Below, piece after piece: positions 61,585 through 64,000 of a stretch of DNA of 64,000 bases; the first letter of the stretch is position 1; each line of letters opens with the position of its first letter. Location: IMG/VR virus record IMGVR_UViG_3300042391_001376, positions 124,001 through 188,000 of that record; one strand, 5' to 3'. Under the pieces are notes generated by a model, which saw only the letters and a list, made by a program, of their open reading frames with translations, searched no databases and had not been told where the DNA came from. Position numbers and translations under genes: made by a program.

Positions 61585-63228
61585 ATGGATAAAGTTTCTT
61601 ACAGTTTTGTAAAAGAAGACAGCAATCTTATCTTTCGGTCTAAAGTAAATTCATTTAATCTTGACCACGTTACAGATAAAGATATAACTTCATTTTTTAC
61701 ATCTTTTTCTAATTATGCTTACTTTGATACTGGCTTGCTTCCTGTTGATGGAACTGGCTTATTAGGTATCAGACGCGCAGGAGACCACACTCAAGTTATA
61801 TACCAGTATAAGCCTGGTATGTATTATGTTAATTGGGGTGCATATGAAAGAGACTCTGATTACACTAAGTATTATTTAGCTCAACCTTACAGGATTGTTG
61901 TTATAGACTTTCTTAGCGACAACCTTTTAGGTGCTAGAACATTTTATACTGTAGAGCCGGCTATCCATTCTGCTGTTCAGCTTTACCATGTAAACTTACC
62001 AAACATTAATTGCAGAGGTTACCGAGGCAACGGTGTTGGTTGGATTTGCCTATACCATAATGAAGATTGGTCTACTCTTCCATTTAATGAAAGATTGAAC
62101 AGAGCTCTTGAGCGTTGTTCTGGCGTTGAAGTATATAACGATGCCAACATGAGTGAAACAGACGGCCCACGCTTTTACCAAGAAAGAGAAATGCCTTTGT
62201 ATACTTGGTCCCCAAGTAAGTGGGAAAAAAAATCTACTGAAGAAGGTTGGGAATGGACTTTAGATTCATCTAATTGGATACCAATTCATGTTGAAAGCAG
62301 AGACAGCCAAGGGCAACACAAAGAAGGCGGCATTCCCCTTACTTTAGTAGACGCAATTATTGGCAACTATAGTTCATACTATGGAGATACTTATTTGCCA
62401 AAACCAGTAAACGCTTTGACTCGTTCAGATCTTGAAATTAATCCAATACAAGTTACTGATTGGTTTGTTAAATCTTATAATTCATCTAAAACTACATTTT
62501 CTGGGTTAGACCCATATTCTGCTAGTTCACAAATCAGAGAACAAAATTCTGTAGCTGTACCTAATTTGTTTGATGAAGACGAAGAAGAAATTGATGAAGA
62601 CAGCGAAGACTACATAGCCTGTACAATGACAGGTGAAGCTACACCAATCGAAGATTGTTCAAAAGATCATTCTTATTACAATGTTAATACAGGCAAATGC
62701 ATGAAGATTTGTTCTGAATGCATAAGCAGTCACGAGATGGTTTACGCAGAAAACACCATGCAGTTTTATGTCCCTGATCATATGGGCGACAGCCTTTATT
62801 ATGATACACACCACGATCAGTATTACGACACTAATGCCATAAAGACTCCTTGGGGCAACTGCTCTAATTGCGGAGGTATTCACATTTCTCCATTCCCAGA
62901 TAAACAATTATTCTTAATTTGGGAAAATCAACAAGAAGAACATTCTTCACTTTGTGCTTTCTGTATAGGTGGAGAAAATGTTGCTGATTGTATTAATTGT
63001 GGCGTCAATGTACCAAGTCACACTTCTCAACATTTTGATCCAACAACAGTAAAGTATGATCCTTCCACACAATACTACCATTGTGCGGTGTGTGTTGAAA
63101 TCCTTCAATCAGCCAATTCTGAAGACGTAGCAGAATCAAACCAAGCTGAAGCTAAAAATTTATTACAACTATTGTCAGAACTTACAGATGGTACTTTAAT
63201 TATATCTTCTGATGAAGAACCGTTCTAA
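61585..63228 (+). CDS. Prokaryotic E2 (UBC-like) domain fused to Cys-rich Zn-finger repeats
   Basis: LYHVNLPNINC...GWICL resembles the prokaryotic E2 P-N...G.(V/I)C motif; multiple CxxC; adjacent to a JAB gene. Confidence 0.55.
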   Translation: MDKVSYSFVKEDSNLIFRSKVNSFNLDHVTDKDITSFFTSFSNYAYFDTGLLPVDGTGLLGIRRAGDHTQVIYQYKPGMYYVNWGAYERDSDYTKYYLAQPYRIVVIDFLSDNLLGARTFYTVEPAIHSAVQLYHVNLPNINCRGYRGNGVGWICLYHNEDWSTLPFNERLNRALERCSGVEVYNDANMSETDGPRFYQEREMPLYTWSPSKWEKKSTEEGWEWTLDSSNWIPIHVESRDSQGQHKEGGIPLTLVDAIIGNYSSYYGDTYLPKPVNALTRSDLEINPIQVTDWFVKSYNSSKTTFSGLDPYSASSQIREQNSVAVPNLFDEDEEEIDEDSEDYIACTMTGEATPIEDCSKDHSYYNVNTGKCMKICSECISSHEMVYAENTMQFYVPDHMGDSLYYDTHHDQYYDTNAIKTPWGNCSNCGGIHISPFPDKQLFLIWENQQEEHSSLCAFCIGGENVADCINCGVNVPSHTSQHFDPTTVKYDPSTQYYHCAVCVEILQSANSEDVAESNQAEAKNLLQLLSELTDGTLIISSDEEPF

Positions 63229-63267
63229 TCAAAAACAACGAATACAATATAACATTAGGGAGAACAT

Positions 63268-64000
63268 ATGTCTCAGCAAGTTGAACAAACTAGCAAGATA
63301 ACTCTTGATCAACTCCAATACTTTTGGATGCCATCAGGTTTGCCTTGCTTCGTCGCAGACAGGGATAGTATTTGCGACATAGTAGAAGATTTTGGTTTTA
63401 ATATTTATTATCTTCTAGCTAATAAAAAAACTGTTAAAACCATTCCGAACAACAGTGTTAAAACCACGACCACAACTGGTTATTCAAGTGGCGCTACAAC
63501 ATACAACTATCCGAGTGCTCAGCCAACACAAGTTATAACATATAACTCTTCTTTGTTTAAAGTTATAAATAATTTTGTTGGTAGAGTTATAGAGCTTTCC
63601 GACGATGAACTTCCAGAAACATTCTTTGTAGCTGAAGAAACATGCGAGTACAATATGCCCGCTATGCCGCATGTTCTTGTTGACAAAATGGATCAATTCT
63701 TTAGACTTGTTTATTCTCAACATGGCACTGAATCAATTGTCTTGTTGACATATGATATGACTAAGACTGGTCCAGAAGGTTGGGGAGTTTTAGTTCCTGA
63801 ACAGTCAAACACCGCAGCACATTGTAAGTATGATGCAGACAGCATTGCTCTTATTAAGCCAGAAGATGTTTTGATTGTCGGATCTGTTCATAGTCACCCA
63901 GAAATGTCGGCTTATGCTTCTGGCACAGACCACGCTGACCAGGCTGATTTTGATGGTCTTCACATTACTTACGGTTGGCAGAAGTCTCAAAACAATGGTG
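63268..64000 (+). CDS. JAB/MPN+ isopeptidase-like protein (truncated by the window; missed by the ORF track)
   Basis: GGGAG SD + ATG 63268, open to the end; GTES...IVGSVHSHPEMSAYASGTDHADQ (E...HxH...S..D). Confidence 0.85.
   Translation, partial: MSQQVEQTSKITLDQLQYFWMPSGLPCFVADRDSICDIVEDFGFNIYYLLANKKTVKTIPNNSVKTTTTTGYSSGATTYNYPSAQPTQVITYNSSLFKVINNFVGRVIELSDDELPETFFVAEETCEYNMPAMPHVLVDKMDQFFRLVYSQHGTESIVLLTYDMTKTGPEGWGVLVPEQSNTAAHCKYDADSIALIKPEDVLIVGSVHSHPEMSAYASGTDHADQADFDGLHITYGWQKSQNNG

Follow-up and report, generated by a model that had tools for sequence, protein, structure and literature searches.

A candidate ubiquitin-like tagging cassette encoded by a tailed phage of roughly 205 kb

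A tailed phage of roughly 205 kb carries what appears to be a full ubiquitin-style protein-tagging set, consisting of a tag (Ubl), a ThiF-type activating enzyme (E1), a very divergent protein resembling conjugating enzymes (E2L) and a JAB protease predicted to remove the tag. Such a gene set has been described so far as bacterial anti-phage equipment and, in the library searched, not as phage equipment. The set begins near the end of the 64,000-nucleotide stretch that we analysed (the window) and continues just past it. The original prediction, that an E2-like protein followed by a JAB isopeptidase marks the start of a phage-encoded conjugation module, is supported: the two ORFs are real, and a ThiF-type E1 and an 83-aa ubiquitin-fold protein lie directly after the JAB gene. 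The UBC fold of the first protein is only moderately supported, however, and its thioester chemistry is inferred. The phage origin is confirmed by a terminase, a portal and a tail fibre in the window and by an IMG/VR record rated 97% complete.

Gene content and conservation of the cassette

The features recognised in the window are as follows.

61183..61566 (+): conserved 127-aa gene of unknown function, the first gene of the syntenic block
61585..63228 (+): E2-like protein (E2L), 547 aa, from an ATG start, with a conserved core of about residues 30-300, a variable Cys-rich C-terminal region and an acidic tail ending in PF
61996..62061 (+): candidate active-site loop of E2L, LPNIN...GWICLYHN, read as LPNINCRGYRGNGVGWICLYHN
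62617..63099 (+): Cys-rich region of E2L with five CxxC pairs (CSEC, CSNC, CAFC, CINC, CAVC), probably zinc ribbons
63214..63225 (+): C-terminal tail of E2L, EEPF
63268..64000 (+): JAB/JAMM metalloprotease, first 244 of 579 codons, running on to genome position C1:189007
63883..63933 (+): JAMM metal-binding motif of the JAB protein, SVHSHPEMSAYASGTDH

In genome order, and using coordinates of L001, the locus of this genome that runs past the window end, the 127-aa gene and E2L are followed by the JAB protease (579 aa, L001 2268-4007), a minimal ThiF-type E1 (252 aa, L001 3997-4755), the Ubl (83 aa, L001 4775-5026) and a PAN/Cdc48-like AAA+ ATPase (L001 5127-6731). The spacing is operon-like, with gaps of 18, 39, -11, 19 and 100 nt. 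A promoter and terminator scan of the cassette gave results at chance level. Two more E2-like paralogs lie downstream (484 aa at L001 9547-11001 and 392 aa at L001 10998-12176), as does an HslV/proteasome-beta-like peptidase. For the 222-aa gene after the AAA+ gene, a search of the protein Atlas gave only a sub-threshold Whirly lead.

Remarkably, the order (127-aa gene)-E2-like-JAB-E1-Ubl-AAA+ is kept in 51 of 51 related contigs long enough to show it, which come from a lineage of about 200-kb tailed phages of which the cassette is a fixed and strongly conserved part. An ortholog of the 127-aa gene, of 119-166 aa, lies just before the E2-like gene in 55 of the 56 related loci, and the remaining one begins inside the E2-like gene; the 127-aa protein itself matches no family. 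The E2L and JAB ORFs are far beyond chance, since both are syntenic in every related contig and E2L has 464 word-search relatives and 202 clusters (at 50% identity) in a library of 1.84 billion proteins.

The JAB ORF starts forty bases downstream of E2L and keeps the whole JAMM motif, E154...H208-S-H210-x7-S218-x2-D221, with HSHPEMSAYASGTD at window positions 63889-63930. E154, H208, H210, S218 and D221 are each kept in at least 95% of 43 orthologs. Against Pfam Prok-JAB, whose cut-off is 25 bits, the full protein scores 23.5 bits and the window part 24.9 bits, and relatives likewise gave only weak precomputed hits. A CxxC...CxxC pair lies at residues 364-384, and there is a weak hit to PRTRC protein A.

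The E1 starts within the last codons of the JAB gene and matches the ThiF family (PF00899, 6e-13) at 48.8 bits against a cut-off of 28.1, and at 49.6 bits in a six-frame search of the genome. Its PDB profile hits include UBA5, Uba4 and ThiF-type E1s. The nucleotide site (GxGGxG; G17, G19, G20, G22), D46, R57-Q58, K66 and D124 are invariant, as is C192 (GELSCQxR), and E1 orthologs are 50-89% identical. The Ubl, 19 nt further on, is predicted to fold as a β-grasp (β-β-α-β-β-β, core pLDDT 88-92), and the top 50 Foldseek matches of the model in the PDB are all ubiquitin, NEDD8, SUMO or other ubiquitin-like proteins and domains, at probability 1.0, TM about 0.6 and E from 5e-4. A PDB sequence-profile search with the Ubl alignment, on the other hand, found nothing useful. 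The tail EFHR(R/K)xGEKG is conserved and G83 is invariant; of 37 distinct orthologs, 33 end exactly at ...GEKG, whereas the other 4 carry two extra residues. The Ubl thus ends in KG and not in GG.

Evidence bearing on an E2-like fold in E2L

E2L matches no sequence family, and the case for an E2-like fold rests on its predicted structure, on its nearest clusters and on one conserved motif. A confident model shows a UBC-like order of elements, that is, a helix, a β-meander, a long loop carrying PN and Cys, and then helices. Of the top 50 matches among 48,161 PDB representatives, 28 are E2/UEV, but the structure matches are weak: Foldseek against the PDB finds nothing at E <= 1e-3, and Ubc4 appears only at rank 23. 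Four viral Atlas clusters match at TM 0.56-0.67, one of them with Prok-E2_D, and 28 of the 30 nearest named Atlas clusters by features carry Prok-E2_D, with a top score of 0.97. The low Atlas recognition value (1729) weakens this feature hit, and the support is indirect, in that 13-20% of the members of such clusters carry PF14460.

Interestingly, C155, in GWICLY, is the only universally invariant Cys of the protein. It sits 15 residues after a Pro-Asn pair, so that P139-N140 and C155 resemble the HPN...Cys site of E2 enzymes with a 7-residue insertion, the usual spacing being 8. Across 140 sequences that include the most divergent cluster representatives, N140, G152, W153, C155 and Y157 are 100% conserved, P139 is 95% and H135 only 81%. 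C143 is 86% and C178 is 36% conserved, and because of the latter value a zinc site made of C143, C155 and C178 was rejected. The Cys-rich region shows conserved CxxC columns in long orthologs and is completely absent from those of roughly 350 aa; it has no significant Pfam match. Most orthologs, with or without this region, end in PF or in another residue followed by F.

No sequence profile supports this assignment. None of 119 family members hits any Prok-E2 (A to E) or UQ_con model even at E 10; E2L finds nothing in Pfam, PHROGs, PADLOC or NCBIfam, and neither do the ten most divergent family representatives in Pfam. A PDB sequence-profile search with the E2L alignment found only chance-level hits, tblastn against 50,697 GenBank phage records found no match, and a BFVD search returned one ortholog and two uncharacterised phage proteins, none named. 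A six-frame search of the genome with Prok-E2_D and UQ_con also gave nothing, although its first step is too coarse for such weak relatives. The downstream paralogs, by contrast, keep PN-x7-C, the canonical E2 spacing, and 4 of 33 hit Prok-E2_D (best E 0.0065). Alignment of the E2L family with the paralog family by hhalign is collinear up to the PN motif but not significant (E 0.14). A complex prediction of E1 and Ubl with E2L as the partner scored 0.00 in two runs, which is not evidence either way.

Proposed function and alternatives

We propose, with moderate confidence and from family knowledge, that the E1 adenylates the C-terminal Gly83 of the Ubl, possibly passing through a thioester on Cys192; that the Ubl then moves to Cys155 of E2L, with Asn140 playing the role of the HPN asparagine; and that it is finally attached to lysines of phage or host proteins. 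The JAB enzyme would trim the two-residue extensions found on some Ubl orthologs and remove conjugates, and the Cys-rich C-terminal regions of E2L and JAB may bind substrates. The roles suggested in the original prediction, modification of host or phage proteins and counter-defence, may apply but remain hypothetical. It is tempting to go further and suggest a self-contained ubiquitin-proteasome-like pathway, in which the Ubl attached by the E1 and E2L, with the two paralogs giving target choice, marks proteins that the PAN/Cdc48-like AAA+ ATPase unfolds and the HslV-like Thr-protease degrades, while the JAB enzyme recycles the tag as Rpn11 does. All of these genes are conserved and syntenic in complete relatives, but we regard this pathway as unlikely on present evidence.

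Since three E2-like proteins are present, E2L may not be the one that takes the Ubl from the E1. One or both paralogs could be the real E2, as they have the canonical spacing and are the only proteins here with any Prok-E2_D profile hits, whereas E2L has the insertion and no profile hit. E2L would then be a non-catalytic E2 variant, an adaptor or an E3-like substrate-selecting factor using its Cys-rich region, which is variable and can be absent, as expected of a targeting module. We consider this possible but less likely, because the complete conservation of C155 and N140 across divergent sequences argues for chemistry rather than scaffolding. In addition, E2L is the E2-like gene placed directly beside JAB, E1 and Ubl in every locus, and six divergent loci (L051-L056) show no detectable paralog within the stretch fetched.

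A more remote possibility is that the E1 and Ubl form a ThiS/MoaD-type acyl-adenylate and thiocarboxylate sulfur carrier, for example for thiolation of a nucleotide, tRNA or cofactor, with E2L and JAB serving other purposes. The E1 is indeed a minimal ThiF/MoeB-like enzyme whose best NCBIfam matches are ThiF, MoeZ and MoeB and whose orthologs JGI names molybdopterin/thiamine adenylyltransferase, and the Ubl tail ...GDNVEF...G seems to recall ThiS/MoaD. However, no rhodanese, PP-loop ATPase or MoaE is found in the genome, while the ThiF positive control is found. The Ubl model matches ubiquitin, NEDD8 and SUMO first, sulfur carriers end in GG whereas this one ends in KG, and some orthologs have trimmable extensions; a JAMM protease and E2-like genes are, moreover, strictly linked to the pair. 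It is also unlikely that the cassette is a morphogenesis aid, as proposed for the λ and T1 tail-assembly proteins I (Ubl) and K (JAB plus NlpC/P60), the only earlier phage example of a Ubl plus JAB pair that we found (PMC1779556). The cassette lies in the non-structural, + strand arm of the genome with WhiB, a helicase, SSB and UDG, and not in the - strand block that holds the portal, terminase and tail fibre. A role in assembly is partly a question of target, so it does not exclude the conjugation mechanism.

The closest known systems are the bacterial BilABCD (type I and II) anti-phage operons (PMC10557695; 10.1101/2023.09.04.556158), which have the same four parts (the E2 being a candidate in our case) and whose Ubl has a conserved Gly that in some members is followed by a few residues, cut off by the JAB enzyme. 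The Bil E2 has a catalytic Cys with a nearby His; here H158, three residues after C155, is kept in 57% of the wide set and in over 90% of close relatives. The phage cassette differs in its gene order, in its 252-aa single-domain E1, which replaces a two-domain enzyme with a separate Cys domain, in its E2L, which is about three times larger and matches no Prok-E2 profile or PADLOC model, and in the attached AAA+ ATPase and two further E2-like genes. Among the PADLOC defence models, only the E1 gives weak hits (E 5e-4 and worse), to CBASS-type E1-E2 models, and E2L, JAB and Ubl give none. In comparison with CBASS Cap2/Cap3 and the Prok-E2_D family, there is no CD-NTase and no E1-E2 fusion, a separate Ubl would be the substrate, and all profile hits are below the family cut-off.

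Our literature searches found no description of a phage-borne E1-E2-Ubl-JAB set, which is absence in the library searched and not proof of novelty, and two jumbo-phage reviews (2021 and 2026), searched by keyword, mention neither ubiquitin-like tags nor JAB enzymes. Ubiquitin-like conjugation has recently been established as an anti-phage weapon of bacteria (Bil, CBASS Cap2). A phage lineage that keeps a complete tag-E1-E2-like-protease set under strong purifying selection would show the virus side using the same chemistry, perhaps to remodel the host proteome, to regulate its own proteins or to interfere with host tagging. The E2L family would be a large, unannotated E2-like family with an unusual active-site loop, placed beside an AAA+ unfoldase and a proteasome-family peptidase.

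Other systems share parts of this arrangement. The archaeal SAMP/UbaA/JAMM system with the PAN-proteasome and the Caldiarchaeum Ub-E1-E2-Rpn11 set (PMC4895103, PMC5654768) likewise combine a small E1, a β-grasp tag ending in Gly and a JAMM protease in a genome that also encodes a PAN/Cdc48-type AAA+ and a proteasome-family peptidase, but SAMPylation needs no E2, and the peptidase here is a single HslV-like subunit and not an alpha/beta 20S particle. The λ/T1 pair also places a ubiquitin-fold protein with a C-terminal Gly next to a JAB peptidase, but those sets have no E1, E2 or AAA+, sit in the tail module, and have the Ubl fused to another domain. The UFM1 pathway (UBA5-UFC1) shares a minimal E1 with its Cys, a candidate in our case, within the adenylation domain, and UBA5 is among the best PDB profile hits; the similarity is nevertheless distant, and UFC1 is small and eukaryotic. 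Finally, eukaryotic large DNA viruses carry E2-fold proteins of their own (for example, ASFV I215L, 7wlh, which was among the structure matches of E2L), but those viruses plug a single enzyme into the host's ubiquitin system, whereas this phage brings the tag, E1, E2-like protein and protease itself.

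Genomic setting and composition of the cassette

The window (bases 124001-188000) belongs to a single IMG/VR virus record of 204,904 bp that CheckV rates 97% complete, and the sequence beyond the window end was retrieved as the stretch L001 (genome 185001-204904), so that a window position equals the L001 position plus 61000. The record is that of a tailed phage, since a large terminase (window 13783-15630, - strand), a portal (6114-7805, - strand) and a tail-fibre protein match PHROGs on the - strand. The + strand arm holds a helicase, an S8 protease, WhiB, SSB and UDG, and it contains the cassette described here. 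Interestingly, GC skew and AT skew change sign at about window 24000-26000, which coincides with the switch from the - strand structural genes to the + strand non-structural arm. The members of the cassette are as follows.

Window 61585-63228: 547-aa protein, referred to as E2L because of the E2-like features discussed below
Window 63268 to beyond the window end: JAB protein, 579 aa in full
From the ATG at L001 3997: ThiF-family E1, 252 aa
Nineteen nucleotides after the E1: ubiquitin-like protein (Ubl), 83 aa
L001 5127-6731 (genome C1:190127-191731): classical AAA+ ATPase, 534 aa, one hundred nucleotides after the Ubl

The first two ORFs are where the original prediction placed them as an E2-like protein followed by a JAB isopeptidase. 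The first contains LPNINCRGYRGNGVGWICLYHN, and five CxxC pairs are found in its last third. It ends in EEPF (window 63214-63225), and most orthologs end in PF, or in another residue followed by F, whether or not they have the Cys-rich C-terminal region; this may be a docking tail. The second ORF is cut by the window end. It carries a complete JAMM site, consisting of E154, H208-S-H210, S218 and D221, each of which is kept in at least 95% of 43 orthologs, although its Prok-JAB score, 23.5-24.9 bits, is just under the Pfam cut-off of 25. The C-terminal half of the JAB protein is Cys-rich. In a divergent sub-lineage (related locus L053, 11334-16575), the JAB protein is 419 aa, its Cys-rich C-terminal domain is a separate 234-aa ORF, and three extra ORFs sit between the Ubl and the AAA+.

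The remaining parts that such a module would need, an E1 and a Ubl, are also present. The E1 overlaps the last 11 nt of the JAB gene, taking the ATG at L001 3997, which matches the N-termini of orthologs. It matches PF00899 at 6e-13, and at 49.6 bits in a six-frame search, and its profile finds UBA5, Uba4 and ThiF-type chains in the PDB. The nucleotide-site residues and C192 are invariant. The AF2 model of the Ubl is a beta-grasp, and all 50 best Foldseek matches are ubiquitin, NEDD8, SUMO or other ubiquitin-like proteins and domains, at probability 1.0. Its tail, EFHR(R/K)xGEKG, is conserved; 33 of 37 distinct orthologs stop exactly at the Gly, and four carry two extra residues. This is the pattern of a modifier that sometimes needs trimming, as described for type II BilA (PMC10557695). 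The best matches of the AAA+ ATPase are Cdc48, PAN and FtsH, with a further match to PADLOC IetA at 4e-28, and it keeps the Walker A and B motifs and an FVG pore loop. Its orthologs mostly end in aromatic-Lys or aromatic-Lys-Ile/Leu/Val (for example AWKI, TWK), which recalls the docking tails of protease-activating ATPases.

The 547-aa protein and the downstream E2-like paralogs

Sequence methods give no identity for the 547-aa protein. Pfam, PHROGs, PADLOC, NCBIfam, a PDB profile search and tblastn against GenBank phages all gave nothing. Its family is large but closed, with 464 word-search hits and 202 clusters in a library of 1.84 billion proteins, 183 of them below 1e-30, and none of the hits listed carries a name. 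None of 119 members touches an E2 profile, even at E 10.

Nevertheless, other lines of evidence agree with each other in suggesting an E2-like protein. A confident model of residues 1-335 (pLDDT 88, pTM 0.86) has a UBC-like order of elements: a helix at 34-42, a beta-meander at 58-122, a long loop at 123-166, and then helices from 167. The nearest ESM-Atlas structures are four phage clusters (TM 0.56-0.67), one carrying Prok-E2_D. By language-model features, 28 of the 30 nearest named clusters carry Prok-E2_D, with a top score of 0.97, although the low recognition value weakens this line. In 140 sequences that include the most divergent representatives, C155 is the only Cys conserved everywhere, and N140, G152, W153 and Y157 are also 100% conserved. 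C143 (86%) and C178 (36%) are not, which excludes a structural zinc site. P139-N140...C155 is therefore an HPN...Cys-like site with a 7-residue insertion.

Two further proteins, related to each other, are encoded downstream.

L001 9547-11001: E2-like protein, 484 aa
L001 10998-12176: E2-like protein, 392 aa

These paralogs share invariant ERPPF, PW, PN-x7-C and WNxD, and the PN-x7-C arrangement is the canonical E2 spacing. They give the only direct Prok-E2_D hits, in 4 of 33 members, with a best E of 0.0065 and all below the cut-off. Profile-profile alignment of the paralogs to E2L is collinear up to the PN motif but not significant (E 0.14). The phage therefore has three E2-like proteins, and it is not clear which one receives the Ubl from the E1.

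Conservation of the cassette and relation to described systems

Fifty-two IMG/VR loci and four other contigs encode an E2L relative. In all 51 loci long enough, the order is 127-aa gene, E2L, JAB, E1, Ubl, AAA+, about-210-aa gene, about-128-aa gene. E1 orthologs are 50-89% identical to the query, Ubl orthologs 37-94% and E2L orthologs 38-61%. Many host contigs are 170-216 kb, and several have terminal repeats and are rated complete. One related 34-kb contig (L012, IMGVR_UViG_GVMAG-M-3300027797-21_000001) is filed under a giant-virus MAG name although it carries this phage cassette, and it was probably binned wrongly. The phage genes include whiB, encoding a WhiB-like transcription factor (window 59217-59549, PF02467 1.3e-12), of which relatives carry one or two copies. 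Others have used whiB to assign freshwater phages, including a few above 200 kb, to Actinobacteria (10.1101/670067); an actinobacterial host is a lead rather than a result.

Bacterial Ubl operons, which are described as anti-phage defence, and the lambda-type Ubl plus JAB pair are already known. In the literature searched, however, we found no phage-borne E1-E2-Ubl-JAB set, and two jumbo-phage reviews, searched by keyword, make no mention of ubiquitin-like tags or JAB. Public annotation calls the E1 a molybdopterin/thiamine adenylyltransferase and leaves the rest unnamed. The cassette is not a member of Bil or CBASS, since its parts fail those models.

Possible mechanism and neighboring genes

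Given the family membership or predicted folds of the Ubl, E1 and JAB, their conserved active-site residues and the strict linkage of the genes, we propose, from what these families do elsewhere, that the E1 adenylates Gly83 of the Ubl, that the Ubl is transferred as a thioester to C155 of E2L and attached to targets by isopeptide bonds, and that the JAB enzyme carries out trimming and removal. These steps are inferred, and a complex prediction gave no verdict and is not used here. The alternative that the E1 and Ubl constitute a sulfur carrier is weak: the genome has no rhodanese, PP-loop enzyme or MoaE, while the ThiF control is found, and the tag ends in KG and resembles ubiquitin more than ThiS. 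A virion-assembly role like that of lambda proteins I and K (PMC1779556) is not excluded, although the cassette lies outside the structural arm.

A larger system is possible. An HslV/proteasome-beta-like gene lies 14.6 kb after E2L.

L001 15227-15841 (genome C1:200227-200841): HslV/proteasome-beta-like protein, 204 aa (PF00227 4e-9)

The protein starts MTTIVG, giving a Thr nucleophile after Met removal. It is present in 5 of 5 complete relatives checked, of about 200-216 kb, where it is 64-85% identical and at a matching position, and all six orthologs start MTTI and keep the Asp, Lys and GAAGD positions. Proteasome homologs in phages are known (PMC8665760), but their pairing with a Ubl cassette and a PAN-like ATPase is not described there. 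That tagging feeds degradation is speculation, and we consider it unlikely.

Other genes of note lie upstream of the cassette.

Window 52056-53522: subtilisin-like (S8) protease, 488 aa (phrog_3677 1e-49)
Window 58347-58802: 151-aa protein with a DnaJ-type CXXCXGXG zinc-finger segment, below the Pfam cut-off
Window 60331-60789: 152-aa membrane protein with an HELGH motif

The S8 protease is conserved upstream of the cassette in the related loci L003-L006. The membrane protein matches the N-terminal half of Peptidase_M50 (site-2 protease; 6.9e-10). The Pfam match is also on record in L005 and L006, and a gene of similar size sits at that position in L003 and L004 without a match on record.
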